Positions 1 through 60,869 of a stretch of 64,000 nt of DNA are shown one piece after another (the stretch's first letter is position 1; each line of letters starts with the position of its first letter). The notes beneath the pieces are model-generated. The model did no database searches. It was not told the DNA's origin and was given only the letters and a program-made list of their open reading frames with translations. The DNA is from Phaeosaccion multiseriatum (taxonomy: Eukaryota; Protista; Ochrophyta, other classes), in assembly GCA_965112735.1 (NCBI GenBank), contig OZ218964.1, forward strand, positions 2,356,001 to 2,420,000, written 5' to 3'. Made by a program: the position numbers and the translations under genes.

Positions 1-1136
1 AGATGAAACGAGCGACGACGGCCTCGCGCCTATTGTACGCTGCAAGGTAGAGGGCTGAAGCGCCAATGTTGGTTCGTTTGTCCACACGTGCTCCCGCAGA
101 AAGAAGCTTCTCCACCACGGCGTCGTGTCCCTGTAGAGAGGCACCGAGAAGAGGAGTGGAACCTTCGAGGTCAGCCTTGTCGATGCTGGCGTGGGCCCTG
201 ATGAGCTGCTGTACGATACCCGCATGCCCATTAATCGATGCCGCCAGAAGCGGAGTAGCCCCGAGATAACTTGCGTGGTTCACATCCGCTTGGGCTGAGA
301 TGAGGTGCCTTACAACAGATCCATGTCCTTTCTGAGAGGCCACCCAAATCGGAGAGAAGCCCTGCTTCTCCGCCAAGTCGACGTTAGCGCGCGCCGAGAG
401 CAGCTGCTGCACTGTCGTGGAGTGCCCCGTTCCTGATGCTGCAATCAAGGGAGTAGCGCCTCTGGCATCCGCTTGGTCGACAGGGGCTCCAGCGTCCAAC
501 AGCCACCTTACCACCTGATCTTGTCCCTCGGCGCTAGCGGCTATCAACGGCGTGCTTCCGTGAGGTCCCTGTCTGGTGCGGAAGGAGGCCCCTTCGCGCA
601 GCAGAAAGTCCATGACATCCAGCCGACCGTGTTGTGCAGCCCTCAACATTGCGGTGTATCCTTCTTCGTCGACAGGCTGATCCAAACTCGCTTTGCCATG
701 TTTGGCGATGAGCTTCCCAACCACCGCTCTCACATTGGGGAAGCTCTTCCCTCTACGCAGGGCCTGCCCCAGCTGCTGGGCCTGGAGTTGTTGAGGGCAG
801 CGAATTCGGGGGGAAGAGACGCACATGCATAGGATAAAAGGGATCAACGGGAAGCTGCTGACTGCTTCGATACGTGCGCATCCCACCTCCGGGAACGTAT
901 CCGTTACCCCCCCTCCCTTTCCTCTCTCCAGATCTATTTCCTCAAAGCGGGGGAGAGGCCCATACACCGGATAAAAAGGGAACAGAGAGCTGCCCATTGC
1001 GTCGACACGTGAGCTTCCATCGCAGCTTCCGTACCCGCACAAGGCCCCTTTCTATGCTATACTCTTTCCTAAGGGCATCGTCTTATAGGAGGGCGCTAAG
1101 TCGTACCTCGCGCGTTAACGTTGCCTGATGCGCCAT
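1..1136 (-). CDS. Ankyrin-repeat protein, copy 1 (3' end beyond window); exon1 1107-1136, intron 782-1106, exon2 <1-781
   Basis: Manual translation MAHQATLTRE|AQQLGQALRRGKSFPNV...GSTPLIAASAEGQ...GATPLIAASGTGH...; GAG|GTACGA donor, CTCCAG| acceptor; colinear with the other 13 copies. Not in ORF track because it runs off the edge. Confidence 0.85.
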
Positions 1137-1232
1137 GGTGAGCAAGCGGCCCCTCCCTTGACACAGTAGTGCTGACAAGGGGGCTACAGAAGGCCTTCTC
1201 CGCGCCTGCTGTGCAGTAGTCGGTCGTTCTGC

Positions 1233-1240
1233 CTTTTATA
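1233..1240 (-). promoter_or_regulatory. Putative TATA box (TATAAAAG) 97 nt upstream of copy 1 ATG
   Basis: Consensus TATA in GC-rich context at constant spacing in copies 1, 5, 11 and 13; no transcript evidence. Confidence 0.4.
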
Positions 1241-1267
1241 CAATGGGGCCTCCCCATTATTACTAAG

Positions 1268-2021
1268 TATTATATTTTTTTTTCTCTTGTCTAAAAGTAA
1301 CGTCTCCACCGCCCCGGCAATCGCCCCGGGGGACAAAAGTTGATACCATTCTGTGGCGAGTGTTTTGATATTGCTGTTCCATCAAAAGGGACGAGATGGT
1401 ACCTCGTGGGGTCATAGTGGATGTCTCCACCCTGGCCCTCCATGCCTACCTGTGGCACCCCATACTTGGTGCGCTTGGTGGCTTCAGCCTTCTTGGCTGC
1501 CGCGAGTGCTTCCTTCGATGCCTTGGCCCTATTGGTGATGTTGGTGGCATCAGTGAGCGTGATGTCGATCATCAGGGACTTGTGGCCATCCCCATATTCG
1601 TGGTCAGGTGGAAGCTCGAACATCCTGGGGGGAGTCACGATGTCCATCTCCATCTGTTTGGCCACGTGGGCGTCACCCCTCACGCCGTTGCCCCCCCCTT
1701 TCCCTCGTCTCGCGGTGACGGTTCGTTCCCTCATGAAGGGGAAGCCGATGTTCTGCACTATCCCTCTGCCCAGTCAGGCCCTCGCTCTTCATCAACGCGA
1801 CAAGTGCCTTCTGCACAGCATTGGAGGTCTCTGAAGGCATTGGGTTTGGTGATCCGATTCACAGATCCCGAACCCAGGGGGGGGGGAGTTCCTTGCGTGG
1901 GCGAGGGCAGAGGCTGTGTTGAGTGCGCACAGACGCGACCGCGCAGCTGCTGCCTAGATGGGCGGTGCCTGCCTTTGGCTTCCACACGAGCACAACCCCC
2001 GCCTAGGACCTGGCGTTCACC
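1268..2021 (-). mobile_element. Decayed 3' fragment of an RLE-type (CRE-like) non-LTR retrotransposon: Zn-knuckle remnant, restriction-like endonuclease, A-rich tail
   Basis: Across frameshifts: LCSCG...HARNS...PNAFR..(H)NAVQKALV...MEMDIV...LMIDITLTD...AAKKAEATKRTKY...YHLVPF, then an A-rich run (AGAGAAAAAAAAATATAAT). Motif order matches the CCHC knuckle plus RLE of CRE/R2-group elements; recognised by eye. Confidence 0.7.
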
Positions 2022-2489: not shown

Positions 2490-3996
2490 TCAGCCCATCT
2501 CCTCCGCCATGCTCTCCCACGTCTCGCTCCCCACACTCCAGGGCCTCTCCAGCGGCAGGATTCCGCTCTCCTTGCCGAAGGTCGGATCCGTCCTTCGCAT
2601 GAGGTCCAGCGCGGTTTGGGACCGGAAGAAGGCTGCTGCCGCCTCCATAAGTCGCTGCTCAATGTCCCGGCCGAGCTGACACCGCCGTGCCCCAGCCAAG
2701 GCCTTGTCCACCGAAGCACCGGCCGAGAGGAGCTGCCGCGTTATCCCGTGGTGGTCTCTGAAGATGGCATAAAGGAGAGGGGTGCCACCGTTTGGTACTG
2801 TGATATCGATGGGGGATCCCGCAGAGATGAGACGAGCGACGACGGCCTCGCGCCTATTGTACGCTGCAAGGTAGAGGGCTGAAGCGCCATTGTTGGTTCG
2901 TTTGTCCACACGTGCTCCCGCAGAAAGAAGCTTCTCCACCACGGCGTCGTGTCCCTGTAGAGAGGCACCGTGAAGAGGAGTCGAACCTTCGAGGTCAGCC
3001 TTGTCGATGCTGGCGTGGGCCCAGATGAGCTGCTGTACGATGTCCGCATGCCCATGAATCGATGCCGCCAGAAGCGGAGTAGTCCCGAGATAACTTGCGT
3101 GGTCCACATCCGCTTGGGCTGCGATGAGGAGCCTTAGAACAGAGCTATGTCCTTTCTGAGAGGCATACCAAATCGGAGAACAACCGTGTTCCTCCGCCAA
3201 GTCGACGTTAGCACGCGCCGAGAGCAGCTGCTGCACTGTCGTAGAGTGCCCCATTACTGATGCTACAATCAAGGGAGTAGCGCCTGTGGCATCCACTTGG
3301 TCGACAGGGGCTCCAATGTCCAACAGCCACCTCACCACCTGATCGCGTCCGTTGCCGCTAGCTACTATTAATGGCGTGTCTCCGACGAGCCCGCATCTGG
3401 TGCGGAAGGAGGCCCCTTCCCGCAGCAGAAAGTCCATGACATCCAGCCGACCGTGTTGTGCAGCCCTCAACATTGCGGTGTATGCGGTATATGCTTCTTC
3501 GTCGACAGGCTGATCCAAACTCGCTTTGCCATGTTTGGCGATGAGCTCCCCAACCACCGCTTTCACATTGGGGAAGCTCTCCCCTCTGACCAGGGCCTGC
3601 CCCAGCCGCCGCGCCTGGAGTTGTTGAGGGAAACGATGTCGGGGGGGAGAGGCGCACATGCATAGGATGAAAGGATCAATAAGAAGCTGCTGACTACTTC
3701 GATACGTGCGTATCCCACCACCTCAGGGATCGTATCCGAAAAGCCCCCCCTCGCTTTGCTCTCTCCGAAACACAGTCAGAGTCCATCTATTTCCTCAAAG
3801 CGGGGGAGAGGCCCATACACCGGATGAAAAGGGATCAACGGAGAGCTTCCCACTGCGTCGACACGTGAGCTTCCCACCGCAGCTTCCGTATCCACACAAG
3901 GACCCTCGCCATGCTCTATTCTTTCCTAAGGACACCGTCTTATAGGAGGGCGCTAGGTCGTACCTCGGGCGTTAACGTTGCCTGCTGCTGCGCCAT
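2490..3996 (-). CDS. Ankyrin-repeat protein, copy 2 (8 ANK); exon1 3964-3996, exon2 2490-3614
   Basis: ORF 2490..3659 has eight 33-aa GxTPL..A...G repeats; exon1 MAQQQATLTPE in CACCATGG context; phase-0 GT-AG intron; in-frame 9-nt duplication (AYTAYTA). Confidence 0.9.
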
Positions 3997-8079: not shown

Positions 8080-9567
8080 TCAGCCCATCTCCTCCGCCAT
8101 GCTCTCCCACGTCTCGCTCCCCACACTCCAGGGCCTCTCCAGCGGCAGGATTCCGCTCTCCTTGCCGAAGGTCGGATCCGTCCTTCGCATGAGGTCCAGC
8201 GCGGTTTGGGACCGGAAGAAGGCTGCTGCCGCCTCCGTAAGTCGCTGCTCAATGTCCCGGCCGAGCTGATTCCGCCGTGCCCCAGCCAATGCCTTGTCCA
8301 CCGAAGCACCGGCCGAGAGGAGCTGCCGCGCTGTCCCGTGGTGGTCTCTGATGATGGCAGCAAGGAGAGGGGTGGCACCGTCTGATGCCGTGATATCGAT
8401 CCGGGATCCCGCAGAGATGAGACGAGCGACGACGGCCTCGTGCCCATTGTACGCTGCAAGGTAGAGGGGTGAAGCACCAATGTTGGTCATTTTGCCCACA
8501 CGTGCTCCCGCAGAGAGAAGCTTCTCCACCACGGCGTCGTGCCCTTCCTGACAGGCATTGCCAAGAGGAGTAGCACCTTGGAGGTCATCAGCCTTGTCGA
8601 TGCTGGCGTGGGCCCTGATGAGCTGCTGTACGATGCCCGCATGCCCTTTGAACGATGCCTTCCAAAGCGGAGTAGTCCCGAGAATACCTGCGTTGTTCAC
8701 ATCCGCTTGGGCTGAGATGAGGTGCCTTACAACAGAGCTATGTCCGTTCTGAGACGCAAGCCAAATCGGAGAAGAACCGTCTCCCGCTGCCAAGTCGACA
8801 CTAGCACGCGCCAAGAGCAGCTGCAGCACTGTCGTGGAGTGCCCCATAGTTGATGCTGCAATCAAGGGAGTAAATCCTCTGGCATCCGCTTGGTCGACAG
8901 GGGCTCCAATGTCCAACAACCGCCTCACCACCTGATCGCGTCCGTTGCCGCTAGCGGCTATCAATGGCGTGTCTCCGACGAGCCCGCATCTGGTGCGGAA
9001 GGAGGCCCCTTCCCGCAGCAGAAGGTCCATGACATCCAGCCGATCGTATTGTGCAGCCCTATACATTGCGGTATATCCTTCTTCGTCGATACGCTGATCC
9101 AAACTCGCTTTGCCATGTTTGGCGATGAGCTTGATAACCAGCGCTCTCACATTGGGGAAGCTCTCCCCTCTGTCCAGCGCCTGCCCCAGCCGCCGCGCCT
9201 GGTGTTGTTGAGGAAAACGATGTCGGGGGGGAGAGGCGCACATGCATATGATAAAAAGATCAACGGGAAGCTGCTCATAGCTTCGATACGTGCGCATCCC
9301 ACCTCAGGGATCGTATCCGAAAAGCCCCCCCTCGCTTGGATCTCTCCGAAACACAGATGTTTCCTCAAAAGCTGGGGAGAGGCGCATACACCGGATGAAA
9401 AGGGATCAACGGAGGCGAGGGCTGCCTGTTGCGTCGACACGTGAGCATCCCCCACCGCAGCTATCGTATCCGCAGAGGGACCTATTCTTTCCGATGGACA
9501 TCGTCATATCGTCATACAGGAGGGCGCTAGGTCGTACCTCGGGCGTTAACGTTGCCTGCTGCGCCAT
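8080..9567 (-). CDS. Ankyrin-repeat protein, copy 3; exon1 9538-9567, exon2 8080-9198
   Basis: ORF 8080..9297 ankyrin motifs; same splice sites; one-codon insertion (DDLQG). Confidence 0.9.
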
Positions 9568-9766: not shown

Positions 9767-12530
9767 TTCCTGCGAGAGCAAGCAGAGCAGGGGACAAGCA
9801 GGAGCCGGAGCCGCTGTATGGACTCCTCTCCCCCCCGCGAGACCAGCGGAGCCCTTCACCTCCTCCCCCCTTCTCCTGCAGGGCCTGGGCATCAGCACTC
9901 CCTCCCCCGGTACGGCTCTGCCCTTCCAGCACCCCTGGACCGATTCCGAGGGCCTGGCCCCGTGGTGCACCACGAATGCTGAGGTGAGTGGTGGCGACTG
10001 CGTGAGGGGTGCGTGAGCGAGCCAAGCTGTGAGCCCCCTGCTTTCGGCTAGATACAGCCTCACCTCCTCTTTAGGAGAGCTCCACTCGCCCACTCCCTTC
10101 CCCTCCCCCGCCCACCCCACCTCCCATACCCCATATCCCACACACCCACAGCCGCTCAAGCTCGTTCATTCTCCGGGCAGACAGGAGCTCCGCGTCGTCA
10201 GCGGGAGAGGGAAAGGGAGAAGGAGAGGGGGTGGGTAGCCGCACGCCGTCGCGAGGAGAGCATGTAGACGAACTCGAAACCGAACTCGATGCCGATGCCG
10301 ATGTCAATGTCGATGTGGAAGGCGCGCCCCTGGAGGAAGCAGGGGTGAGAGATGCCTCCATCTCCTTGTCCTCTTCCTCCCACGCGGCCTTGTTGCAGCG
10401 CGTGGGTCTCGCGATACCCAACTTTGACCGTGTGCAGCAGTATGAAGACCTGCAGCGGGAGCTGGAGATGGTCAGGGGGGAGGAGGAGAAGGACTACGCA
10501 GGAGGAGGGAGGACCCGAGCGACTAGAGGGGAGGGCTCTCGGCGGGGACAGACGACTCGGCCTGCCAGCGCTCGGCCTCGGATGGAGGGGGGCGCCGGGC
10601 AGACCCAGGGGGGGCAGGGTGGGCAGGAACGGAAGGAAGCAAGTGGCTGTAGATGAAAGTTGAGGGCTGAAGGCTGAATGACAGTATGACAGCAGCTGTC
10701 AAGGCCGAGTGGGGATGGAGGGGGGTCGGTACCAGAATGTTGGGGGGGCAAAGGCGCAAAGACGCCAAGGTGGATGATCAACAATTGAGTCAATTTCGCC
10801 CTTCTTTCTCTCTCTCTGTCGCTCTCGCTCTGGCTCTCTTTATCTCTCTCTCTCTCCCTCCTTGTCCCTCTCTCTCCCCTCTCTCTCTCGCTCTCGTCAC
10901 ATGCCTCTCTCTCTCCCACCTTTCCTCTCTCCCTCCTCTCTCCCTGTCTCTCCCTCCTTTCCACCTCCCCCCTCCGTCTACTCGTGGGCCACAGACGCGT
11001 ACACCGCTCTGCTTCGACAGCAGGCCAGGCAGCGCTCGCAGCGCCCGCGACATGAAGAGGCGGAACGAACAGCGGCAGCAGCAGCGCAGAGGGGGAAAGG
11101 GCGGCAGAGAAGGAGGGCTGCTGATGCTGGGGGCGGCAGCGGTTCTGCAGCAACAGCGGCAATCCGGCCTTCCTCCCTTCCGTCCTTCCGTCCTTCCTTC
11201 CTTCCTTCCTTCCTTCCTTCCTTCCTTCCTTCCTTCCTTCCTTCCTTCCTTCCTTCCTTCCTTCCTTCCTTCCTTCCTTCCTTCCTTCCTTCCTTCCTTC
11301 CTTCCTTCCTTTCCTTCCTTCCTTCCTTCCTTCCTTCCTTCCTTCCTTCCTTCCTTCCTTCCTTCCTTCCTTCCTTCCTTCCTTCCTTCTTCCCTCCCTC
11401 CCTTCCCCCCTTCCTTCCGTCCTTCCTTCCTTCCTTCCTTCGTTCCTTCCTTCGTTCCTTCGTTCCTTCCTTCCTTCCTCCCTCCCGTCCTTCCTTCCTT
11501 CCTTCCTCCCTCCCGTCCTTCCTTCCTTCCTTCCTTCCTTCCTTCCTTCCTTCCTTTCTTTCTTCCTTCCTCCCTTCCTTCCTTCCTCCCTTCCTTCCTT
11601 CCTTCCTTCGTTCCTTCGTTCCTTCCTTCGTTCCTTCCTTCCTTCCTTCCTTCCTTCCTTCCTTCCTTCCTCCCTTCCTCCCTTCCTCCCTTCCTTCCTT
11701 CCTTCCTTCCACTCATTGACTTAGCGCTCACTCTGACGACCTCTCCTTCCCCTCTCTTCTCTCTCTCTCCACATTCTTCACCCTCTGTCTTCCCCCTCCC
11801 CTCTGTCCACCCTTTCTCCCCTGCTGCCAGGGAACAAGTACGCATCATCGAAGAAGACCCTTCCGCTGCCGCCACCGGAGCGCCTTCCTTGTACAGAGAC
11901 CGTTCCAGATCGGTACAACAGCTTCGACCCGCCCCCTTGGACTCAATGCGGAGCGGTCTGCGATCGTGCCGGGCCTCGCGATCCCCCGGGGCGGAGGGGA
12001 GGGGGCGGGAGGAGGATACGTTGGGTGGAGGGCCAGGGGGGGAGGGGAGCATGAGCCATCGGAGCGTTCTCAATCTCGCCATGGGGGGGGGGGGGAGAAG
12101 CTCTGCCTCTGTTTCTGTCTATGGCTCCAACCCTTAGGAGGAGGAGGAGGAGGAGGAGGGGGGCGTCACAAATGGCTTCAGTACCACCAACACCAGGAGA
12201 GGGAGAGGGCGCTGGGAGGGGAGGGCAAGGTATTGGACTTGGGTATCAGCAGAGGCCCATTGGAAGCCCCGTCACAGGGACGGGCAGGAGAGAGAAGGAG
12301 GGGGTATCATTGGTGGTAGTGGTGGTGGTGGCGGGGTTGGTGTTAGGCCGGAGTCAGCCCCTGTGAGTCGGGGGGGGAGGGGTGAAGGCGGGGGTAGCGG
12401 GGGAGAGGAGGGAGGGACACCGCGAGGGAGGGTAGCAGGAGGAGGGGCAAGAGGAGGAGTAGGAGGAAGAGGAGGAGGAAGTGGAGGATGAGGGCGAGGC
12501 GGGCACGGCAGGTAGACGGGGAACCCATCC
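9767..12530 (+). pseudogene. Copy of plus-strand gene relic (internal deletion ending in the TTCC tract)
   Basis: Colinear with 4205-7180; junction aatccggc|cttcctccc at ~11168. Confidence 0.4.
11168..11710. repeat. (TTCC)n microsatellite, ~540 nt, interrupted
   Basis: Direct reading. Confidence 0.95.
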
Positions 12531-13440: not shown

Positions 13441-14903
13441 TCAGCCCATCTCCTCCGCCATGCTCTCCCACGTTTCGCTCCCCACACTCCAGGGCCTCTC
13501 CAGCGGCAGGATTCCGCTCTCCTTGCCGAAGGTCGGATCCGTCCTTCGCATGAGGTACAGCGCGGTTTGGGACCGGAAGAAGGCTGCTGCCGCCTCCATA
13601 AGTCGCTGCTCAATGTCCCGGCCGAGCTGATTCCGCCGTGCCCCAGCCAATGCCTTGTCCACCGAAGCACCGGCCGAGAGGAGCTGCCACGCTATCCCGT
13701 GCTGGTCATTGTGGATGGCAGCAAGGAGAGGAGTCATAGCGGTTGCTGTGGTCGTATCGATGGGGGATCCCGCAGAGATGAGACGAGCGACGACGGCCTC
13801 GCGCCTATTGTACGCTGCAAGGTAGAGGGCTGAAGCGCCAATGTTGGTTCGTTTGTCCACACGTGCTCCCGCAGAAAGAAGCTTCTCCACCACGGCGTCG
13901 TGTCCCTGTAGAGAGGCACCGAGAAGAGGAGTGGAACCTTCGAGGTCAGCCTTGTCGATGCTGGCGTGGGCCTTGATGAGCTGCTGTACGATACCCGCAT
14001 GCCCATTAATCGATGCCGCCAGAAGCGGAGTAGCCCCGAGATAACTTGCTTGGTTCACATCCGCTTGGGCTGAGATGAGGTGCCTTACAACAGATCCATG
14101 TCCTTTCTGAGAGGCCATCCAAATCGGAGAAGAACCGTCTTCCGCTGCCAAGTCGACGTTAGCACCCGCCGAGAGCAGCTGCTGTACTGTCGTGGAGTGC
14201 CCCGTTCCTGATGCTGCAATCAAGGGAGTAGCGCCTCTGGCATTCGCTTGGTCGACAGGGGCTCCAGCGTCCAACAGCCACCTTACCACCTGATCTTGTC
14301 CCTCGGCGCTAGCGGCTATCAACGGCGTGCTTCCGTGAGGTCCCTGTCTGGTGCTGAAGGAGGCCCTTTCCCGCAGCAGCAGGTCCACGACATCCAGTCG
14401 ACCGTATTGTGCAGCCACAAGCATTGCGGTATATCCATTTTCGTAGATAGGCTGATCCAAGCTCGCTTTGCCATGTTTGGCGATGAGCTTGGTAACCACC
14501 GCTCTCACATTGGGGAAGCTGTCTTCTCTGTTCAGGGCCTGCCCCAGCCGCCGCGCCTGGTGTTGTTGAGAACAATGATGTCGGGGGGGAGAGGCGCACA
14601 TGCATAGGATAAAAGGGTCAACAAGAAGCTGCTGACTACTTCGATCCCCCCCCCCCCCCCCTCCCTCGCTTTCCTCTCTCCATCGCACAGATATTTCCTC
14701 AAAAGCGGGGGAAAGGCGCATACACCGGATAAAAAGGGATCAACGGAGGGGAGAGCTGCCCACTGCGTCGACACGTGAGCTTCCCACCGCAGCTTCCATA
14801 TCTGCACAAGGACTCTCTCTATGCTCTATTCTTTCCTAAGGACATCGTCTTATAGGAGGGCGCTAGGTCGTACCTCGGGCGTTAACGTTGCCTGCTGCGC
14901 CAT
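13441..14903 (-). CDS. Ankyrin-repeat protein, copy 4; exon1 14874-14903, exon2 13441-14556
   Basis: ORF 13441..14721 ankyrin motifs; conserved donor and acceptor; exon2 1116 nt. Confidence 0.9.
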
Positions 14904-15107
14904 GGTGAGCAAGCGGCCCCTCCCTTGAGACGGTAGTGCTGACAAGGGGGCTACAGAAGGCCCTCTCCCTGCTGCACCTGCCGTGCAGTAGTCGGTCGCT
15001 CTGCCTTTCTTATCAGGCCTCCCCGTGATATGTTTAGTTATGGAGGCCTCTGAAGGCATTGGGTTTGGTGATCCGATTCACAGATCCCGATCCCAGGGGG
15101 GGGGGAC

Positions 15108-19956: not shown

Positions 19957-19967
19957 TGGCCTCCCCA

Positions 19968-46977: not shown

Positions 46978-47009
<32 letters not shown>

Positions 47010-47833
47010 CCTTCCTCCTTTCCTACTTCCTTTCCTTCCACTCATTGACTTAGCAGTCCCTCTCACGACCTCCTCCCATCCTCTCTTCTCTCTCTCTCCA
47101 CTCTCTCCATCCTCTCCTCCCCCTCCCCTCTGTCCACCCTTTCTCCCCTGCTGCCAGAGCAAGTACGCATCATCGAAGAAGATCCTTCTGCCGCCGCCAC
47201 CGGATCGCCTTTCTTGCACAGAGACCGTTCCAGATCGGTACAACACCTTCGACCTGCCCCCTTGGAGTCAACGCGGAGCGGTCTGCGATCGTTCCGGGCC
47301 TCGCGATCCCCCGGGATGGAGGGGAGGGGGCGGGAGGAGGATACGTTGGGTGGAGGGCCAGGGGGAGGGGGGAGCATGAGCCATCGGAGCGTTCTCAATC
47401 TCGCCATGGGGGGGGGGGGAGAAGCTCTGTCTATGGCTCAAACACTCAGGAGGGGGAGGAGGAGGAGGGGGGCGTCACAAATGGCTTCAGTACCACCACA
47501 CCAGGAGAGGGAGAGGGGGCTGGGAGGGGAGGGCAAGGTATTGGACTTGGGGATCAGCAGAGGCCCATTGGAAGCCCCGTCACAGGGACGGGCAGGAGAG
47601 AGGAGGAGGAGGTATCATTGGTGGTAGTGGTGGTGGCGGCGGGGTTGGTGTTAGGCCAGAGTCAGCCCCTGTGAGTCGGGGGGGGAGGGAAGGCGGGGGT
47701 AGCGGGGGAGAGGAGGGAGGGACACCGCGAGCGAGGGTAGCAGGGGGAGGGGCAAGAGGAGGAGTAGGAGGAAGAGGACGAGGAAGTGGAGGATGAGGAA
47801 GAGGCAGGCACGGCAGGTAGACGAGGAACCCAT
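44957..47833 (+). pseudogene. Copy of plus-strand gene relic (internal deletion at ~46351)
   Basis: Colinear; same deletion as ~40668. Confidence 0.4.
46634..47039. repeat. (TTCC)n microsatellite, ~400 nt
   Basis: Direct reading. Confidence 0.95.
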
Positions 47834-47834
47834 C

Positions 47835-47913
47835 CTCACTCACTCACTCACTCACTCACTCACTCACTCACTCACTCACTCACTCACTCACTCACTCACT
47901 CACCCACTCACTC
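47835..47913. repeat. (ACTC)n microsatellite
   Basis: Direct reading. Confidence 0.95.
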
Positions 47914-48798
47914 ATGCACCACGTATTCACTTTCTAGCTCTATTCTATAAGCGAAGTCCAGAGAGCAAATGCAATACACATGCTTCTCCAAGGTCGAGAG
48001 GCAAGCAGCAAGATTCACAGATGGATACAATTGCGGCACTCCGTATCCACTGCCTCCCCGCTACTCTCTTCCGTCCGCTGGGAAACATGGCTCACCCGTA
48101 CGCTTCTATCTGATCCCCACTTGATATTGCCGAGGGGGCAGAAATAGAGACCAAGAAGTAGCAGAGCACTGTGGAAGTCACTGAGTACCAGCTCATCTTG
48201 TTAGTTTACGTAATCTTTCGTAATAGCAAAGTGTTTCATCAGTCACTGAGTACGCGTAGACTCGATTGGGCGGAGCTTACCTACTGCCTCCACAGGGGCA
48301 CAACCCCCGCCTAGGACCTGGCGTTCACCTTCACCACTCTGTGTTTAGCAGGGCAGTACCCTTCTCTAATAATCTGTGACTACTTGCTGTGCCCGCATGC
48401 CCCACCCAGGAAGGAAGCCCTCGGCCTCTATCCATCGGGATTACACTCTCCCCCCTCTAAACGAGCTGACCTTCCCTCTCACCCCCCCCCCCTCAACCTA
48501 TACACTTCAACCATTGGTCCCATAAGCTACACACGTCACTCCCCTCCCCCCCGGACCCCCATCCTCCTGCGGTACTCTGACTCCTCTCTGCGACAGAGCA
48601 TCGCAATCACTTCACCGCTCTTACACCAAGCCAGTGTGCCGTGGGCTGTCTCTCTCGCATCGCATCCTGATGTACAGGCTCACTCGCATGGGCTGCATGA
48701 CTGGCTGGTGCAAGCGAGCAAGCTGGAGCGGTACTCTTTCGTTGCCAAAGTCGTCACTGCCCCTACCAGCCCCCACCTCGCACATCCCTCCTACTCGC

Positions 48799-50272
48799 TC
48801 AGCCCATCTCCTCCGCCATGCTCTCCCACGTCTCGCTCCCCACACTCCAGGGCCTCTCCAGCGGCAGGATTCCGCTCTCCTTGCCGAAGGTCGGATCCGT
48901 CCTTCGCATGAGGTCCAGCGCGGTTTGGGACCGGAAGAAGGCTGCTGCCGCCTCCATAAGTCGCTGCTCAATGTCCCGGCCGAGCTGATTCCGCCGTGCC
49001 CCAGCCAATACCTTGTCCACCGAAGCACCGGCCGAGAGGAGCTGCCGCGCTATCCCGTGCTGGTCATTGTGGATGGCAGCAAGGAGAGGAGTCATACCGG
49101 TTGCTGTGGTCGTATCGATGGGGGATCCCGCAGAGATGAGACGAGCGACGACGGCCTCGTGCCTATTGTATGCTGCAAGGTAGAGGGCTGAAGCGCCAAT
49201 GTTGGTTCGTTTGTCCACACGTGCTCCCGCAGAAAGAAGCTTCTCCACCACGGCGTCGTGTCCCTGTAGAGAGGCACCGAGAAGAGGAGTGGAACCTTCG
49301 AGGTCAGCCTTGTCGATGCTGGCGTGGGCCCTGATGAGCTGCTGTACGATACCCGCATGCCCATTAATCGATGCCGCCAGAAGCGGAGTAGTCCCGAGAT
49401 AACTTGCGTGGTTCACATCCGCTTGGGCTGCGATGAGGAGCCTTACAACAGAGCCATGTCCGTTCTGAGAGGCCATCCAAATCGGAGAACAACCGTGTTC
49501 CTCCGCCAAGTCGACGTTAGCACGCGCCGAGAGCAGCTGCTGCACTGTCGTAGAGTGCCCCATTACTGATGCTGCAATCAAGGGAGTAGCGCCTGTGGCA
49601 TCCACTTGGTCGACAGGGGCTCCAATATCCAACAGCCGCCTCACCACCTGATCGCGTCCGTTGCCGCTAGCGGCTATCAACGGCGTGCTTCCGTGAGGTC
49701 CCTGTCTGGTGCTGAAGGAGGCCCTTTCCCGCAGCAGCAGGTCCACGACATCCAGTCGACCGTATTGTGCAGCCACAAGCATTGCGGTATATCCCTCTTC
49801 GTCGATAGGCTGATCTAAGCTCGCTTTGCCATGTTTGGCGATGAGCTTGGTAACCACCGCTCTTACATTGGGGAAGCTGTCTTCTCTGTCCAGGGCCTGA
49901 CCTAGCCGCCGCGCCTGGTGTTGTGGAGGGCAGCGAATTCGGGGGGGAGAGACGCACATGCATAGGATAAAAGGATCAACAGGAAGCTGCTTGACTGCTT
50001 CGATAAGTTAGCATCCCACCTCAGGGATCGTATCCGAAATGCCCCCCCTCGCTTTGCTCTCTCCGAAACACAGATATTTCCTCAAAAGCGGGGGAGAGGC
50101 GCATACACCGGATAAAAAGGGAACGGAGAGCTGCCCACTGCGTCGTCACGTGAGAATCCCACCGCAGCTTCCATATCTGCATAAGGACTCTCTCTATGCT
50201 CTATTCTTTCCTAAGGACTTACAGGAGGGCGCTAGGTCGTACCTCGGGCGTTAACGTTGCCTGCTGCGCCAT
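48799..50272 (-). CDS. Ankyrin-repeat protein, copy 11; exon1 50243-50272, exon2 48799-49914
   Basis: ORF 48799..49959 ankyrin motifs; conserved splice sites. Confidence 0.9.
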
Positions 50273-50368
50273 GGTGAGCAAGCGGCCCCTCCCTTGAGAC
50301 GGTAGTGCTGACAAGGGGGCTACAGAAGGCCCTCTCCGCGCCTGCTGTGCAGTAGTCGGTCGCTCTGC

Positions 50369-50376
50369 CTTTTATA
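50369..50376 (-). promoter_or_regulatory. Putative TATA box upstream of copy 11
   Basis: TATAAAAG, same spacing. Confidence 0.4.
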
Positions 50377-50387
50377 TGGCCTCCTCA

Positions 50388-51125
50388 TTATTTTTTTTTC
50401 TCTTGTCTAAAAGTAACGTCTCCACCGCCCCGGGGGACAAAAGTTGATACCATTCTGTGGCGAGTGTTTTGATATTGCTGTTCCATCAAAAGGGACGAGA
50501 TGGTACCTCGTGGGGTCATAGTGGATGTCTCCACCCTGGCCCTCCATGCCTACCTGTGGCACCCCATACTTGGTGCGCTTGGTGGCTTCAGCCTTCTTGG
50601 CTGCCGCAAGTGCCTCCTTCGAGGCCTTGGCCCTATTGGTGATGTTGGCGGCATCAGTGAGCGTGATGTCGATCATCAGGGACTTGTGGCCATCCCCATA
50701 GTACTCGTGGTCAGATGGAAGCTCGAACATCCTGGGGGGAGTCACGATGTCCATCTCCATCTGTTTGGCCACGTGGGCGTCACCCCTCACGCCGTTGCCC
50801 CCCCCTTTCCCTTGTCTCGCGGTGACGGTTCGTTCCCTCATGAAGGGGAAGCCGATGTTCTGCACTATCCCTCTGCCCAGGCCCTCGCTCTTCATCAACG
50901 CGACAAGTGCCTTCTGCACAGCATTGGAGGTCTCGGAAGGCATTGGGTTTGGTGATCCGATTCACAGATCCCGATCCCAGGGGGGGGGAGTTCCTTGCGT
51001 GGGCGAGAGGGCAGAGGCTGTGCTGAGTGCGCGCAGACGCGACCGCGCAGCTGCTGCTTAGATGAGCGGAGCTTGCCTTTGGCTTCCACACGAGCACAAC
51101 CCCCGCCTATGACCTGGCGTTCACC
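50388..51125 (-). mobile_element. Decayed RLE non-LTR retrotransposon fragment
   Basis: ORF 50407..50943 NAVQKALVALMKSEGLGRG...MDIV...IDITLTD...KRTKY...LVPF. Confidence 0.7.
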
Positions 51126-51574
51126 TTTACAATTGTGTGTTTCTAAGCTACGACTCTTTGCTGTGCCCCGCATGCCCCACCCAGGAAGGAAGCCCTCGGC
51201 CTCTATCCATCGGGATTGCACTTCTCCCCCCTCCACATGAGCTGACCTTCCCTCTCACCCCCCCCCCCCTCAAGCTATACACTGCATCCATTGGGCCCGT
51301 AAGCTACACACGTGACTCCCCTCCCCCCCGGACCCCCTACCTCCTCTACTCCGACTCCTCTCTGCGACAGAGCATCGCAATCACTTCACCGCTCTTACAC
51401 CAAGCCAGTGTGCCGTGGGCTGTCTCTCTCTCGTATCGCATCCTGATGTACAGGTTCACTCGCATGGGCTGCATGACTGGCTGGTGCAAGCGAGGAAGCT
51501 GGAGCGGTACCCTTTCGCTGCCAAAGTCGTCGTTGCCCCTACCAGCCCCCACCTCGCACATCCCTCCTACTCGC

Positions 51575-53062
51575 TCAGCCCATCTCCTCCGCCATGCTTT
51601 CCCACGTCTCGCTCCCCACACTCCAGGGCCTCTCCAGCGGCAGGATTCCGCTCTCCTTGCCGAAGGTCGGATCCGTCCTTCGCATGAGGTCCAGCGCGGT
51701 TTGGGACCAGAAGAAGGCTGCTGCCGCCTCCATAAGTCGCTGCTCAATGTCCCGGCCGAGCTGACGCCGCCGTGCCCAAGCCAAGGCCTTGTCCACCGAA
51801 GCACCGGCCGAGAGGAGCTGCCGCGCAGTCCCGTGGTGGTCATTGTAGATGGCAGCAAGGAGAGGGGTGGCACCGTTTGGTGCTGTGACATGGATGGGGG
51901 ATCCCGCAGAGATGAGACGAGCGACGGCGGCCTCGCGCCCATTCTGCGCTGCAAGGTAGAGGGGTGTAGCGCCATTGTTGGTCCTTTTGCCCACACGTGC
52001 TCCCGCAGAAAGAAGCTTCTCCACCACGGCGTCGTGCCCTTCCTGACAGGCAACGTGAAGAGGAGTAGCACCTTGGAGGTCAGCCTTGTCGATGCTGGCG
52101 TGGGCCCTGATGAGCTGCTGTACGATACCCGCATGCCCTTGGAACGATGCCTTCGAAAGCGGAGTAGTCCCGTCATTATCTGCGTTGTTCACATCCCCTT
52201 GGGCTGAGATGAGGAGCCTAACAACAGAGCCATATCCGTTCTCAGAGGCCACCCAAATCGGAGAGAAGCCCTGCTTGTCCGCCAAGTCGACGTTAGCGCG
52301 CGCCGAGAGCAGCTGCTGCACTGTCGTGGAGTGCCCCATAGTTGATGCTGCAATCAAGGGAGTAAATCCTCTGGCATCCGCTTGGTCGACAGGGGCTCCA
52401 ATGTCCAACAGCCGCCTCACCACCTGATCGCGTCCGTTGCCGCTAGCTATTATCAATGGCGTGTCTCCGACGAGCCCGCATCTGGTGCGGAAGGAGGCCC
52501 CTTCCCGCAGCAGAAAGTCCATGACATCCAGCCGACCGTGTTGTGCAGCCCTCAACATTGCGGTATATCCTTCTTCGTCGATAAGCTGATCCAAACTCGC
52601 TTTGCCATGTTTGGCGATGAGCTTCAGAACCACCGCTCTCACATTGCGGAAGCTGTCCCCTCTACGCAGGGCCTGCCCCAGCTGCCGCGCCTGGTGTTGT
52701 TGAGAATAACGATGTCGGGGGGGAGAGGCGCACATGCATAGGATAAAGGGGTCAACAGGAAGCTGCTTGACTGCTTCGATACGTGCGCATCCCACCTCAG
52801 GGATCGTATCCGAAAAGCCCCCCCTCGCTTTTCTCTCTCCGAAACACAGTCAGAGTCCATCTATTTCCTCAAAGCGGGGGAGAGGCCCATACACCGGATA
52901 AAAAGGGAACGGAGAGCTGCCCACTGCGTCGACACGTGAGCTTCCCATCGCAGCTTCCGTACCCGCACAAGGACCCTCTCTATGCTCTATTCTTTCCTAA
53001 GGATTTATCACATCTCATATAGGTCGTACCTCGGGCGTTAACGTTGCCTGCTGCTGCGCCAT
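51575..53062 (-). CDS. Ankyrin-repeat protein, copy 12; exon1 53030-53062, exon2 51575-52690
   Basis: ORF 51575..52795 ankyrin motifs; conserved splice sites. Confidence 0.9.
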
Positions 53063-53265
53063 GGTGAGCAAGCGGCCCCTCCCTTGAGACGGTAGTGCTG
53101 ACAAGGGGGCTACAGGAGGCCTTCTCCCTGCTGCGCCTGCTGTGCAGTAGTTCGTCGCTCTGTCTTTTGTATCAGGCCTCCTCCCGCTGATATGTTTAGT
53201 TATGGAGGCCTCTGAAGGCATTGGGTTTGGTGATCCGATTTTCACAGATCCCGATCCCAGGGGGG

Positions 53266-55256
53266 TGCGAGAGCAAGCAGAGCCGGGGGGGGTCAGTGGG
53301 AGGAGAAGGAGAAGGGCAAGCAGGAGCAGGAGCCGCTGTATGGACTCCTCTCCCTCCCGCGAGACCAGCGGAGCCCTTCAGCTTCTCCCCCCTTCTCCTG
53401 CAGGGCCTGGGCATCAGCACTCCCTCCCCCGGTACGGCTCGGCTCTTCCAGCACCCCTGGACCGATTCCGAGGGCCTGGCCCCGTGGTGCACCACGAATG
53501 CTGAGGTGAGTGGTGGCGACTGCGTGAGGGGTTCGTGAGCAAGCCAAGCTGTGAGCCCCCTGCTTTCGGCTAGATACAGCCTCACCTCCTCTTGAGGAGA
53601 GCTCCACTCGCCCACTCGCTTCCCCTCCCCCGCCAGTTCTGCAGCAACAGCGGCAATCCGGTCAAGCCTCTGCGGTGAGGGAGGGAGTTGGAGATACAGA
53701 GGGAGGGAGTGAGCGAGTGCTAGAGTGATGGAGGGAGTGAGGTAGAGTGAAAGGGGGTGAAAGCGTGAGGGAGTTGAATTGGAGCGGGAGGAAGTGAGGG
53801 AGCGAGAGCGGGGGGGGGGAGGAAGGAAGAAGGGTAGCAGCGCCGCCAGCATGGCAGTGAGGTCTCGCAACAGAGAAGACAGCGATGTGTGTATTGAATG
53901 AGTAATTGATGCCCTCGGTCCTGTGTGTGCTCTGCTCCTCTGCCGCTCTGCCGCACCATTCATGTCTGCTCGATCCTGCTCTACGCGGCTCTGTCCTTAC
54001 TCCTCATGTCTCATCCCAAAGGCCAAGCTTCGGAGTCGTCGGGAGAAGCAGCAGCGGCGGAGCAGCGGCCATCGCGGCGACAGGCGTGGTTGGATCCAGC
54101 ACGGCCAGGGAAGGAGCAAGGCCGGTGACGGCTGCTGCTGCTGTACTACCAACTGCTGTATCTCGAGACGAGGTGCTGGAGTGGAGTAAGCAGATCGAGA
54201 TGGCACTGGACAGGAGGGCAGAGCTCGTCGAGGGCGGCAAGATGTTCGCCGTCAATGGAAGGTGAGGGGGAAGGGGGGTGAAGGGGTGAGGGAGGGAGGG
54301 AGGGAGGGTGTGAGGGAGGGTGTGAGGGAGGGAGGGAGGGACCGAAAGAGGGGATGGAGCGACGAAACGATGGGGCGACTCCCCGCAGCACCGTGGTGCG
54401 TTCTGCTCTACCCCTCTTGACATACGCTTCCTCCCTGCCTCCATCCTCCCTTCCGTCCTTCCTTCCTTCCTTCCTTCCTTCCTTCCTTCCATCCTTCCTT
54501 CCTTCCTTCCTTCCTTCCTTCCTTCCTTCCTTCCTTCCTTCCTTCCTTCCTTCCTTCCTTCCTTCCTTCCTTCCTTCCTTCCTTCCTTCCTTCCTTCCTT
54601 CCTTCCTTCCTTCCTTCCTTCCTTCCTTCCTTCCTTCCTTCCTTCCTTCCTTCCTTCCTTCCTTCCTTCCTTCCTTCCTTCCTTCCTTCCTTCCTTCCTT
54701 CCTTCCTTCCTTCCTTCCTTCCTTCCATGCTTCCTTCCTTCCTTCCTTCCCTCGTTCGTTCGTTCGTTCGTTCCACTCATTGACTTAGCGTTGACTCTGA
54801 CGACCTCCCCTCCCCCTCTCTTCTCTTCGCCACCCTCTCCACCCTCTCCTCTCTGTCCACGCTTCCTCCCCTTTTCCCCCTGCTGCAAGGGAACAAGTAC
54901 GCATCATCGAAGAAGATCCTTCCGCCGCCGCCACCGGAGCGCCTTCCTTGCACAGAGACCGTTCCAGATGGGACAGCCGGATGCAACAGTGTGGACCCGC
55001 CCCCTTGGAGGTAGCGCGGAGCGGTCTGCGATCGTTCCGGGCCTCGCGATCACCCGGGGTGGAGGGGAGGGGGCGGGAGGAGGATACGTTGGGTGGAGGG
55101 CCAGGGGGGGAGGGGAGCATGAGCCATCGCAGCGTTCTCAATCTCGCCATTGGGGGGGGGGGGGAAGCTCTGTCTATGGCTCCAACACTCAGTAGGAGGA
55201 AGAGAATGAGGAAGTGGAGGAAGAGGCAGGCACGGCAGGTAGACGGGGAACCCATC
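53266..55256 (+). pseudogene. Copy of plus-strand gene relic (large deletions at ~53633 and ~55195)
   Basis: Junction cccccgc|cagttctgcag; remaining blocks colinear. Confidence 0.4.
54440..54774. repeat. (TTCC)n microsatellite ending in a short (TTCG)n
   Basis: Direct reading. Confidence 0.95.
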
Positions 55257-56164: not shown

Positions 56165-57620
56165 TCAGCCCATCTCCTCCGCCATGCTCTCCCACGTCTC
56201 GCTCCCCACACTCCAGGGCCTCTCCAGCGGCAGGATTCCGCTCTCCTTGCCGAAGGTCGGATCCGTCCTTCGCATGAGGTCCAGCGCGGTTTGGGACCGG
56301 AAGAAGGCTGCTGCCGCCTCCATAAGTCGATGCTCAATGTCCCGGCCGAGCTGATTCCGCCGTGCCCCAGCCAATGCCTTGTCCACCGAAGCACCGGCCG
56401 AGAGGAGCTGCCGCGCTATCCCGTGCTGGTCATTGTGGATGGCAGCAAGGAGAGGAGTCATAGCGGTTGCTGTGGTCGTATCGATGGGGGATCCCGCAGA
56501 GATGAGACGAGCGACGACGGCCTCGCGCCTATTGTACGCTGCAAGGTAGAGGGCTGAAGCGCCAATGTTGGTTCGTTTGTCCACACGTGCTCCCGCAGAA
56601 AGAAGCTTCTCCACCACGGCGTCGTGTCCCTGTAGAGAGGCACCGAGAAGAGGAGTGGAACCTTCGAGGTCAGCCTTGTCGATGCTGGCGTGGGCCCAGA
56701 TGAGCTGCTGTACGATGCCCGCATGCCCATTAATCGATGCCGCCAGAAGCGGAGTAGCCCCGAGATAACTTGCGTGGTTCACATCCGCTTGGGCTGAGAT
56801 GAGGTGCCTTACAATAGATCCATGTCCTTTCTGAGAGGCATACCAAATCGGAGAATAACCGTGTTCCTCCGCCAAGTCGACGTTAGCACGCGCCGAGAGC
56901 AGCTGCTGCACTGTCGTAGAGTGCCCCATTACTGATGCTGCAATCAAGGGAGTAGCGCCTGTGGCATCCACTTGGTCGACAGGGGCTCCAATGTCCAACA
57001 GCCACCTCACCACCTGATCGCGTCCGCCGCCGCTAGATACTATCAATGGCGTGTGTCCGACGAGCCCGCATCTGGTGCGGAAGGAGGCCCCTTCGCGCAG
57101 CAGAAAGTCCATGACATCCAGCCGACCGTGTTGTGCAGCCCTCAACATTGCGGTGTATCCTTCTTCGTCGACAGGCTGATCCAAACTCGCTTTGCCATGT
57201 TTGGCGATGAGCTCCCCAACCACCGCTCTCACATTGGGGAAGCTCTCCCCTCTACGCAGGGCCTGCCCCAGGTGCTGGGCCTGGAGTTGTTGAGGGCAGT
57301 GAATTCGGGGGGGAAGAGACGCACATGCATAGGATAAAAGGGATCAACGGGAAGTTGCTGACTGCTTCGATACGTGCGCATCCCAGGGAACGTATCCGTT
57401 ACCCCCCCTCCCTTTCCTCTTTCCAGATCTATTTCCTCAAAGTGGGGGAGAGGCCCATACACCGGATAAAAAGGGAACAGAGAGCTGCCCATTGCGTCGA
57501 CACGTGAACTTCCCACCGCACAAGGACCCTTTCTATGCTATACTCTTTCCTAAGGGCATCGTCTTATAGGAGGGCGCTAACAAGTCGTACCTCGCGCGTT
57601 AACGTTGCCTGATGCGCCAT
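56165..57620 (-). CDS. Ankyrin-repeat protein, copy 13; exon1 57591-57620, exon2 56165-57280
   Basis: ORF 56165..57232, nearly identical to copy 5; exon1 MAHQATLTRE. Confidence 0.9.
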
Positions 57621-57716
57621 GGTGAGCAAGCGGCCCCTCCCTTGACACAGTAGTGCTGACAAGGGGGCTACAGAAGGCCCTCTCCGCGCCTGCTGTGCAG
57701 TAGTCGGTCGTTCTGC

Positions 57717-57724
57717 CTTTTATA
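57717..57724 (-). promoter_or_regulatory. Putative TATA box upstream of copy 13
   Basis: TATAAAAG, same spacing. Confidence 0.4.
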
Positions 57725-57734
57725 TGGCCTCCCC

Positions 57735-58924
57735 ATTATTATTATATTTTTTTTTCTTTTGTCTAAAAGTAACGTCTCCACCGCCCCGGGGGACAAAAGT
57801 TGATACATTCTGTATTGACTTGGGTGGCGAGTGCTTTCATAAATATCAAATGCGCCTTGCTGTTCCATCCCAAAAGGGACGAGATGGTACCTCGTGGGGT
57901 CATAGTGGATGTCTCCACCCTGGCCCTCCATGCCTACCTGTGGCACCCCATACTTGGTGCGCTTGGTGGCTTCAGCCTTCTTGGCTGCCGCACAAGTGCT
58001 TCCTTCGATGCCTTGGCCCTATTGGTGATGTTGGTGGCATCAGTGAGCGTGACGTCGATCATCAGGGACTTGTGGCCATCCCCATAGTACTCGTGGTCAG
58101 ATGGAAGCTCGAACATCCTGGGGGGAGTCACGATGTCCATCTCCATCTGTTTGGCCACGTGGGCGTCACCCCTCACGCCGTTGCCCCCCCCTTTCCCTCG
58201 TCTCGCGGTGACGGTTCGTTCCCTCATGAAGGGGAAGCCGATGTTCTGCACTATCCCTCTGCCCAGTCAGGCCCTCGCTCTTCATCAACGCGACAAGTGC
58301 CTTCTGCACAGCATTGGAGGTCTCGGAAGGCATTGGGTTTGGTGACCCGATTCACAGATCCTGATCCCAGGGGGGGGGAGTTCCTTGCGTGGGCGAGGGC
58401 AGAGGCTGTGTTGAGTGCGCACAGACGCGACCGCGCAGCTGCTGCTTAGATGAGCGGAGCTTGCCTTTGGCTTCCACACGAGCACAACCCCCGCTTAGGA
58501 CCTGGCGTTCACCTTTTCACGGCCTTCCCGGTCGGATACCTCTCCCCAACACTCACAATTAGGTAAGAGGGGGTACTTGCCAGTCGGAAGTTAGAGAGGA
58601 GGACGAGTCTTTGCGCACCCGGCACCGCCCCTCTGACGGTGCCGCGCACACTCCAACCCACCCGATTCTCTATCTCCCCGCGGTAGATCATACCAATGGG
58701 TACCCCTCGAATATCTCCCCACTGAGTCCACCAGTCCCCCGGGGCGGGTGTGTGGGAGAAGATTCACCGCGTTAGCTGCTTTCAGGGCAGCGACTCCTAT
58801 CCTCGCCTCCACTCAACCACACCACACCACAGTCCTCTTATGCCACATCCTCAAGTTTCTAAACCCCATCCTCCCTCGCCAGTCCGTGAAAAGTCGTTTT
58901 CCCACCGGGGTACGAAAACTCCCC
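57735..58924 (-). mobile_element. Decayed RLE non-LTR retrotransposon fragment, least deleted 3' end
   Basis: ORF 57668..57946 retains YHLVPFGMEQQGAF (the P-x-x-x-E-x-x-G motif lost by frameshift in the other copies); ORF 57934..58251 has IDVTLTD. Confidence 0.72.
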
Positions 58925-59372
58925 TTACAATTGCGTGTTTCTAAGCTGTGACTACTTGCTGTGCCCTGCATGCCCCACCCAGGAAGGAAGCCCTCAGCCT
59001 CTATCCATCGGGATTACAATCTCTCCCCCCTTCAAACGAGCTGACCCTCCCTCTCACCCCCCCCCCCTCAAGCTATACACTTCATCCATTGGTCCCATAA
59101 GCTACACACGTGACTCCCCTCCCCCCCCCGGACCCCCTACCTCCTGTACTCCGACTCCTCTCTGCGACAGAGCATCGCAATCACTTCGCCGCTCTTACAC
59201 CAAGCCAGTGTGCCGTGGGCTGTCTCTCTCCCTCGCATCGCATCCTCATGTACAGGTTCACTCGCATGGGCTGCATGACTGGTGCAAGCGAGCAAGCTGG
59301 AGCGGTACTCTTTCGTTGCCAAAGTCCTCGCTGCCCCTTCCAGCCCCCACCTCGCACATCCCTCCTACTCGC

Positions 59373-60869
59373 TCAGCCCATCTCCTCCGCCATGCTCTCC
59401 CACGTCTCGCTCCCCACACTCCAGGGCCTCTCCAGCGGCAGGATTCCGCTCTCCTTGCCGAAGGTCGGATCCGCCCTTCGCATGAGGTCCAGCGCGGTTT
59501 GGGACCGGAAGAAGGCTGCTGCCGCCTCCATAAGTCGCTGCTCAATGTCCCGGCCGAGCTGCCACCACCGTGCCCCAGCCAAGGCCTTGTCCACCGAAGC
59601 ACCGGCCGAGAGGAGCTGCCGCGCAGTCCCGTGCTGGTCATTGTGGATGGCATAAAGGAGAGGGGTGCCACCCTGTGATGTCGTGACATCGATGGGGGAT
59701 CCCGCAGAGATGAGACGAGCGACGGCGGCCTCGCGCCCATTCTCCGCTGCAAGGTGGAGGGGTGAAGCGCCGATGTTGGTTCGTTTGTCCACACGTGCTC
59801 CCGCAGAAAGAAGCTTCTCCACCACGGCGTCGTGTCCCTGTAGAGAGGCACCGTGAAGAGGAGTGGAACCTTCGAGGTCAGCCTTGTCGATGCTGGCGTG
59901 GGCCCAGATGAGCTGCTGTACGATGCCCGCATGCCCATTAATCGATGCCGCCAGAAGCGGAGTAGTCCCGACATAACTTGCGTGGTCCACATCCGCTTGG
60001 GCTGAGATGAGGAGCCTTACAACAGAGCTATGTCCTTTCTGAGAGGCATACCAAATCGGAGAACAACCGTGTTCGTCCGCCAAGTCGACGTTAGCACGCG
60101 CCGAGAGCAGCTGCTGCACTGTCGTAGAGTGCCCCATTACTGATGCTGCAATCAAGGGAGTAGCGCCTGTGGCATCCACTTGGTCGACAGGGGCTCCAAT
60201 GTCCAACAGCCGCCTCACCACCTGATCGCGTCCGTTGCCGCTAGATACTATCAATGGCGTGTCTCCGACGAGCCCGCATCTGGTGCGGAAGGAGGCCCCT
60301 TCCCGCAGCAGAAAGTCCATGACATCCAGCCGACCGTGTTGTGCAGCCCTCAACATTGCGGTGTATCCTTCTTCGTCGACAGGCTGATCCAAACTCGCTT
60401 TGCCACGTTTGGCGATGAGCTTCCCAACCACCGCTCTCACATTGGGGAAGCTCTCCCCTCTACGCAGGGCCTGCCCCAGCCGCCGCGCCTGGTGTTGTTG
60501 AGGGAAACGATGTCGGGGGGGAGAGGCGCACATGCATAGGATGAAAGGATCAATAAGAAGCTGCTGACTACTTCGATACGTGCGTATCCCACCACCTCAG
60601 GGATCGTATCCGAAAAGCCCCCCCTCGCTTTGCTCTCTCCGAAACACAGTCAGAGTCCATCTTTTTTTTAAAGCGGGGGAGAGGCCCATACACCGGATGA
60701 AAAGGGATCAACGGAGAGCTTCCCACTGCGTCGACACGTGAGCTTCCCACCGCAGCTTCCGTATCCACACAAGGACCCTCGCCATGCTCTATTCTTTCCT
60801 AAGGACACCGTCTTATAGGAGGGCGCTAGGTCGTACCTCGGGCGTTAACGTTGCCTGCTGCTGCGCCAT
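59373..60869 (-). CDS. Ankyrin-repeat protein, copy 14; exon1 60837-60869, exon2 59373-60488
   Basis: ORF 59373..60533 ankyrin motifs; conserved splice sites. Confidence 0.9.

Follow-up and report, generated by a model that had tools for sequence, protein, structure and literature searches.

A window of 64,000 nucleotides in the genome of the ochrophyte Phaeosaccion multiseriatum (assembly GCA_965112735.1, contig OZ218964.1, positions 2,356,001 to 2,420,000; all positions below are counted from its first letter) carries one ankyrin-repeat (ANK) gene in 14 tandem copies, all on the minus strand. These copies have very probably swapped sequence with each other repeatedly, by germ-line homologous recombination acting over evolutionary time. 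Thirteen of the 14 copies are complete, copy 1 being truncated by the window start, and their coding sequences (CDS) are 87.6–99.2% identical in pairwise DNA comparison. Each gene sits in a larger repeated unit of 2.8–5.7 kb, and the base composition of the window is 60% G+C. A preliminary description, made from the sequence alone, had proposed that variable patches are shuffled combinatorially between these paralogues, and its copy numbering could be recovered (copy 2 at 2490–3659 through to copy 14 at 59373–60533). Segmental exchange between paralogues is indeed the best explanation of the data, given the pairwise homoplasy index (PHI), the conflict between segment trees in the approximately unbiased (AU) test, the decay of linkage disequilibrium (LD) with distance, 19 significant tracts and a 297-nt expansion in copy 7.

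The CDS alignment of the 13 full copies has 1157 ungapped columns, with 276 variable sites, 179 of them informative. The PHI test, which the preliminary description had suggested as a check, gives a strong signal of recombination on this alignment (z about -11.7 to -11.9, p < 0.0005). Because adjacent co-varying bases could mimic such a signal, the test was also run on thinned sites, where it gives z of -8.3 with one site per codon and -5.2 with one per 9 nt, and p of 0.01 and 0.03 with one per 15 nt and one per 30 nt; merging of identical adjacent patterns gives z of -9.2. As a null, 200 alignments were simulated without recombination on the maximum likelihood (ML) tree, using the general time-reversible model with four free rate categories (GTR+R4) and retaining the site-specific rates. 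Over 100 simulations under this null, z averages 0.17 ± 1.1 and never drops below -2.15, and 5% of values are lower than -1.645. The PHI test is thus well calibrated, and the observed value of -11.9 is far beyond the null. Incompatible pairs make up 0.42 of all site pairs, compared with 0.20 ± 0.03 in the simulations, and LD decays along the gene, r2 being 0.35 at distances under 25 nt and 0.09 at distances over 800 nt (p 0.0005).

Congruence of the whole gene with one tree, the outcome against which the preliminary description had set its proposal, is not found. ML trees of seven segments (five from the gene itself and one from each flank, upstream and downstream) conflict with each other, and a single tree fails. 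In AU cross-tests among the seven trees, 42 of 42 comparisons reject (p < 0.02, most below 1e-4); within the CDS segments all 20 of 20 reject, with a difference in log-likelihood of 69 at the median and 18 at the minimum. These cross-tests are anti-conservative, since between 1 and 10 of 20 comparisons are also rejected in 15 no-recombination simulations, and the effect sizes were therefore judged against those simulations, in which the median difference is only 0.1–8.4 and the maximum 8–31.

Individual exchanges can be located. A GENECONV-like scan, in which runs of matching polymorphic sites are taken for each copy pair and assessed by global permutation (with the columns of the copy 7 insertion subtracted from the lengths), finds 19 tracts of about 100–275 nt in the CDS and flanks that are significant array-wide. 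Several of these, as well as a patch in copy 1, have both ends within otherwise diverged sequence and therefore bear the mark of gene conversion or double exchange. The chimeras named in the preliminary description were examined in triplets from the DNA alignment, at sites where the two proposed parents differ, by maximum chi-squared (max-chi2) with permutation, and each is borne out (p = 1e-4 for all). Copy 11 has 26 consecutive sites of the copy 4 type (49672–49793), then 21 consecutive sites of the copy 9 type (49490–49664), with a max-chi2 of 31.3. Copy 9 begins with some 75 sites of the copy 2 type and continues with 24 consecutive sites of the copy 4/5 type (37807–38089), the switch point lying between 38089 and 38149. 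Copy 1 joins 38 sites of the copy 5 type (580–805) to 23 of the copy 4 type (471–571) and to the patch of 13 sites, which from its sequence looks like a conversion tract, while copy 14 combines a 5' end of the copy 7 type (12 sites), a middle of the copy 8 type and 3' patches of the copy 7 type, with a junction at 60382–60423. The donor-type runs, of 21–39 consecutive sites, extend over silent and framework sites too.

Some results weigh against this reading. The minimum number of recombination events of Hudson and Kaplan (Rmin) is 44, which is unexceptional beside the rate-heterogeneous null (36 ± 5.7), and it was dropped as evidence. PHI on purely synonymous codons gives p = 0.23, from 16 informative sites that leave the test no power. 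The main junction of copy 11 has no bridging unitig, among the matches listed, in the public read data described below. Finally, a single assembly gives no clean separation of gene conversion from crossover that is double or has happened repeatedly.

The first of these points bears on the possibility that there has been no exchange, and that recurrent or convergent mutation at hypervariable, selected codons has produced the mosaic appearance on a single gene tree. A null with heterogeneous rates does reproduce Rmin, and the variation is concentrated in amino-acid-changing codons, which hold 239 of the variable sites against 36 in purely synonymous codons, with dN/dS reaching 2.2 at the binding positions; these figures made it necessary to rule out convergence. 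Because the synonymous-only test had no power, the non-coding flanks and spacer were taken as a selection-free control. They give the same signal as the gene, with PHI p values of 0.002 for the 445-nt upstream flank and 0.0007 for the 420-nt downstream flank, and z of -4.6 (p 0.0005) for a 1.2-kb part of the long spacer. The null without exchange also fails on PHI, on the share of incompatible pairs and on tree conflict, it does not account for LD that falls with distance, and the long donor-type runs include silent and framework sites. Mutation on a single gene tree is thus an extremely unlikely source of the pattern.

The lack of a bridging unitig bears instead on the possibility of an assembly or polishing artefact, in which reads from different paralogues are mixed in the consensus or in short-read polishing and so fake conversion tracts. 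The window is represented by a single assembly, and the read data consist of Logan unitigs only, 60–155 nt long, from five public runs (four of them on a single sample, the fifth from a different study), which were placed on 47100–53099 at 98% or higher. Unitigs of this length show no bridging of the main junctions, and only 50–67% of the 31-mers sampled from the window are present in the four same-sample runs. However, copy-specific unitigs of 77–155 nt align to copies 11 and 12 without a single mismatch, and one of them (49870–49946) crosses the 5' switch of copy 11 from the copy 1/5/13 type to the copy 4 type. The copies differ by 4–12%, and the units by spacer type and many indels, so that long reads should separate them easily. 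All 13 full copies retain an open frame, none shorter than 355 codons, and the mosaicism is uniform in genes, flanks and spacers and comes in clean blocks of 100–275 nt. We consider an artefact of this kind improbable. The depth of unique unitigs is similar over genes and spacers, which suggests that the runs are DNA libraries; no RNA run turned up.

The pattern shows that the main process is ectopic gene conversion, with tracts of about 100–275 nt whose ends are often both intragenic. It also shows a second process, unequal and out-of-register crossover, which built and reshuffled the array, mixed its two types of spacer and provided copy 7 with its three extra repeats. The extra repeats form a second 297-nt unit in which the end of ANK5 runs directly into the beginning of ANK3. 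Units 1 and 2 of copy 7 differ at 41 of 297 nt, and unit 2 holds a patch of the copy 1/12 type; a fresh internal duplication in copy 7 is ruled out by these 41 differences. The spacers are either short (1.6–2.0 kb) or long (4.3–4.8 kb). The copies downstream of short spacers (copies 1, 5, 11 and 13) have one common 5'-end type, and the intermingling of short with long spacers, either kind being linked to one 5'-end type, points to crossover between units. Exchange does not favour adjacent copies, as there is no proximity effect across the array (Mantel r -0.15), neighbours being no more alike than distant copies. A higher-order repeat of seven units, as might be read from the likeness of copies 2 and 9, 4 and 11, and 7 and 14, was considered and rejected, since the spacer types and other pairs do not fit it.

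The shuffling of variable patches envisaged in the preliminary description has to be modified in its scope. The exchange is real, but it is not specific to the patches: because the flanks and the spacer carry the signal, the whole unit exchanges and the variable patches are not singled out, the long spacer being itself a mosaic. Tract ends ignore the borders of repeats, as at the copy 11 junction within ANK2. What acts here is thus ordinary homologous exchange of the unit as a whole, with no device aimed at the variable patches, and it covers the coding and non-coding parts of the unit alike. The idea of a limited pool of modules also needs qualification, as it applies to short patches (3–8 variants each at the scale of a turn triplet or helix triplet) but not to whole repeats, which are nearly all unique (8–13 protein variants per repeat among 13–14 copies). 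The full-length combinations are different in 13 of 13 copies. Point mutation supplies many private variants besides, singletons making up 97 of the 276 variable sites.

What survives of the exchanged sequence depends on selection. The six most variable of the 33 repeat positions are two before the G of GxTPL, one after this G, one in helix 1 and two before GH, and at these hypervariable positions dN/dS is 2.2, compared with 0.68 in the framework. In a structural model they occupy the turn that leads into helix 1 as well as a single face of that helix, which is the usual ANK binding groove. Copies 4 and 7 share 97.8% identity in their upstream spacers (14602–16250 versus 28621–30270) but only 87.9% in their CDS. 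The coding ANK region is thus more diverged than the adjacent non-coding spacer, the inverse of the usual pattern, which speaks strongly, if indirectly, for diversifying selection on the gene. One exchange process therefore homogenises where selection permits and shuffles where difference is favoured. Diversifying selection on the positions of the binding face lets exchanged patches survive as new combinations and escape homogenisation, and the parts that exchange has homogenised are the 3' flank and the tail, which is invariant at its C-terminal end. Shuffling may in this way have multiplied useful binding surfaces, as the preliminary description supposed; the combinations may confer distinct binding specificities, and the genes are presumably expressed.

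Exchange could also be programmed. Targeted systems that copy cassettes between the members of an array within the life of the organism are known for VSG, VLR and chicken Ig genes, and have been proposed for brown-algal LRR/TPR genes. The large size of the array and its dense shuffling without a proximity effect would suit such somatic diversification, as would the three copies with 5'-end defects, which could serve as silent donors, and the long (CTTC)n tract in every long spacer, which might promote breaks. Yet there is no distinct expression site or acceptor locus in the window, the copies being full-length and all sharing the same types of upstream region, non-coding DNA exchanges equally, as untargeted homologous recombination predicts, and within-sample variants are few in the read data. 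A programmed system of this kind is very unlikely. Similarly little probability attaches to a diversity-generating locus, in which exchange would be actively promoted, by break-prone (CTTC)n or by a dedicated pathway, and would proceed at a high mitotic or meiotic rate. If that were true, individuals or clones would carry different ANK repertoires, and the array would amount to the 'controlled recombination' immunity that has been hypothesised for brown algae, here on intronless ankyrin genes.

The proteins encoded by the array would have 355–503 residues, comprising a head of about 55 residues, eight ANK repeats (eleven in copy 7) and a tail of about 67 residues, and the genes appear to be intronless. 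Pfam identifies only ANK families, with Ank_2 at E = 1e-46 in copy 14 and 1e-82 in copy 7, and for the head and tail it gives no family even at E <= 10. As Pfam reports ANK families only, neither NACHT nor NB-ARC is found, and the proteins are not assigned to the NLR/STAND class; nor is there a Pfam match in copy 14 or copy 7 to an F-box, BTB or SOCS-box, the domains expected of a ubiquitin-ligase adaptor. Homologue searches with the whole protein return generic ANK proteins only, at no more than 39% identity, and neither a search with the tail alone nor one of the ESM Atlas returns anything. An AlphaFold (AF2) model has an eight-repeat ANK solenoid of eight helix pairs (predicted local distance difference test (pLDDT) score 85, predicted template modelling (pTM) score 0.80). 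The tail is near-identical across copies (dN 0.021, dS 0.018). Its final 25 or so residues (59373–59450 in copy 14, with the equivalent 3' ends elsewhere) do not vary among the 13 copies and are predicted to be disordered, with pLDDT below 50. This invariant end may hold a conserved motif for docking or degradation, and a divergent motif resembling an F-box, BTB or SOCS-box is conceivable in a tail of this predicted character.

The features of the array are collected in Table 1. The open frames of copies 3, 4, 7 and 12 run 18–40 codons upstream of the common ATG, in sequences that differ from each other. Copies 5 and 13, whose CDS are 99.2% identical, have a 1-nt insertion near the 5' end (at 19540–19556 and 57310–57326), and copy 8 has a TGA at about 33600–33615. 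In these three copies a GTG further downstream opens a frame of 355 codons. Translation may begin at another codon in them, or they may be defective at the 5' end and still act as sequence donors.

Table 1. Coordinates of the ANK genes, exchange junctions and spacer elements of the array
Feature	Position	Strand	Remarks
ANK copy 1	1–826	-	N-terminus to ANK7, truncated by window start; chimera of copy 5 type, copy 4 type and copy 12/copy 7 type patch
ANK copy 2	2490–3659	-	389 aa; 9-nt AYT insertion in common with copy 9
ANK copy 3	8080–9297	-	Open reading frame (ORF) of 405 aa; homology to common ATG stops at 9243
ANK copy 4	13441–14721	-	ORF of 426 aa; common ATG at 14601
ANK copy 5	18395–19556	-	1-nt insertion directly past common ATG; 355-aa open frame from GTG
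ANK copy 6	21592–22752	-	386 aa
ANK copy 7	27163–28674	-	503 aa; 11 ANK repeats versus the usual 8
ANK copy 8	32468–33628	-	In-frame TGA in 5' head; 355-aa open frame
ANK copy 9	37556–38725	-	389 aa; 5' part of copy 2 type, 3' part of copy 4/5 type
ANK copy 10	43270–44430	-	386 aa
ANK copy 11	48799–49959	-	386 aa; 5' end and upstream of copy 1/5/13 type, then copy 4 type, then copy 9 type
ANK copy 12	51575–52795	-	ORF of 406 aa; common ATG at 52735
ANK copy 13	56165–57326	-	1-nt insertion identical to that of copy 5
ANK copy 14	59373–60533	-	386 aa; 5' end of copy 7 type, middle of copy 8 type, 3' patches of copy 7 type (59447–59772)
Copy 11 main junction	49664–49672	-	Between last copy 4 type and first copy 9 type site, within ANK2
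Copy 1 patch	343–410	-	13 sites, common to copy 12 and copy 7 unit 2; copy 4 type sequence on either side
Copy 7 second 297-nt unit (three repeats)	27667–27963	-	End of ANK5 joined to start of ANK3; product of out-of-register exchange
Short-type spacers	827–2489, 19557–21591, 49960–51574, 57327–59372		Upstream of copies 1, 5, 11 and 13
Long-type spacer, example	44427–48798		Repeats along with the gene; itself mosaic
(CTTC)n/(GAAG)n tracts, first four of 8	11168–11710, 17212–17489, 31323–31560, 36378–36647		Long spacers only
(CTTC)n/(GAAG)n tracts, remaining four of 8	40937–41500, 46620–47039, 54427–54774, 63167–63430		Long spacers only

The (CTTC)n tracts, one of 240–560 bp in every long spacer, are polypurine–polypyrimidine sequences of the kind able to form triplex DNA. 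The short spacers contain about 550 nt that is absent from all of the long ones (19965–20513, with homologues in 827–2023, 49960–51128 and 57327–58558) and are therefore not plain deletion derivatives. The longest ORF in this short-spacer-specific DNA (1396–2040, + strand) has no Pfam match. Among ten spacer ORFs compared with Pfam, the only family found is Yae1_N (54004–54888, - strand; E 6e-10), a match taken as spurious because it falls in translated (CTTC)n microsatellite.

The mechanism is not new, being a well-known evolutionary route of recognition-type gene families. In the repeat domains of fungal NLR proteins, whose repeats are nearly identical, gene conversion and unequal crossing-over create hybrid repeats and change repeat number, with positive selection at binding positions (PMC2873952), and similar repeat reshuffling and selection are reported for fungal ANK, TPR and WD NLRs (PMC13449251). 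The Phaeosaccion array resembles these NLR/STAND genes, such as the WD40-containing hnwd genes of Podospora, in positive selection on the binding face and in reshuffling by conversion and unequal crossover. It differs in that its genes have no Pfam match to NACHT, NB-ARC or an effector domain, and in that exchange is chiefly between separate tandem genes, the repeats within one gene being mutually diverged. Among algae, the ROCO-LRR and NB-ARC-TPR genes of Ectocarpus evolve fast, with diversifying selection on their repeats and exon shuffling that blurs paralogy (PMC3341825; PMC11378527). Here too the genes are algal, encode fast-evolving repeat proteins under diversifying selection and have obscured paralogue relations. 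However, in Ectocarpus every repeat is encoded by an exon of its own and shuffling moves complete exons, whereas the genes of the array are apparently intronless and tracts cross the borders of repeats; the repeats are also of another type (ANK), and neither a GTPase nor an NB-ARC domain is present.

Plant R-gene clusters (of the NLR, Cf and Xa21 types) are likewise made of tandem mosaic paralogues, formed by conversion and unequal crossover and with diversifying selection on solvent-exposed residues. The array shares with them its tandem mosaic arrangement and the combination of exchange with diversifying selection, but the plant proteins have an LRR fold with signalling domains, in contrast to the ANK fold here. 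An artificial parallel is provided by the libraries of designed ankyrin repeat proteins (DARPins) of Binz et al. (2003/2004), in which six positions were reportedly randomised. Five of the six variable positions of the array (the two before G, the one after and the two before GH) correspond to five of these randomised positions. Both combine a fixed framework with variable positions. Unlike DARPins, the array is natural and has an extra variable position in helix 1, and its genes possess a head that is unique and a tail that is invariant, both without known relatives.

The array evolves in two ways at once, as the calibrated tests show, with recombination of whole units both homogenising and reshuffling it and selection keeping the binding face diverse. 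This signature matches the recognition-protein repertoires of plants and fungi, and it is found here in genes that are ANK-only and whose head and tail are lineage-specific. It makes the array a candidate for a recognition system in a group that has received little study, with possible roles in immune-like recognition, in discrimination between self and non-self or in conflict with viruses, and the value of the locus lies in its being well delimited and testable.

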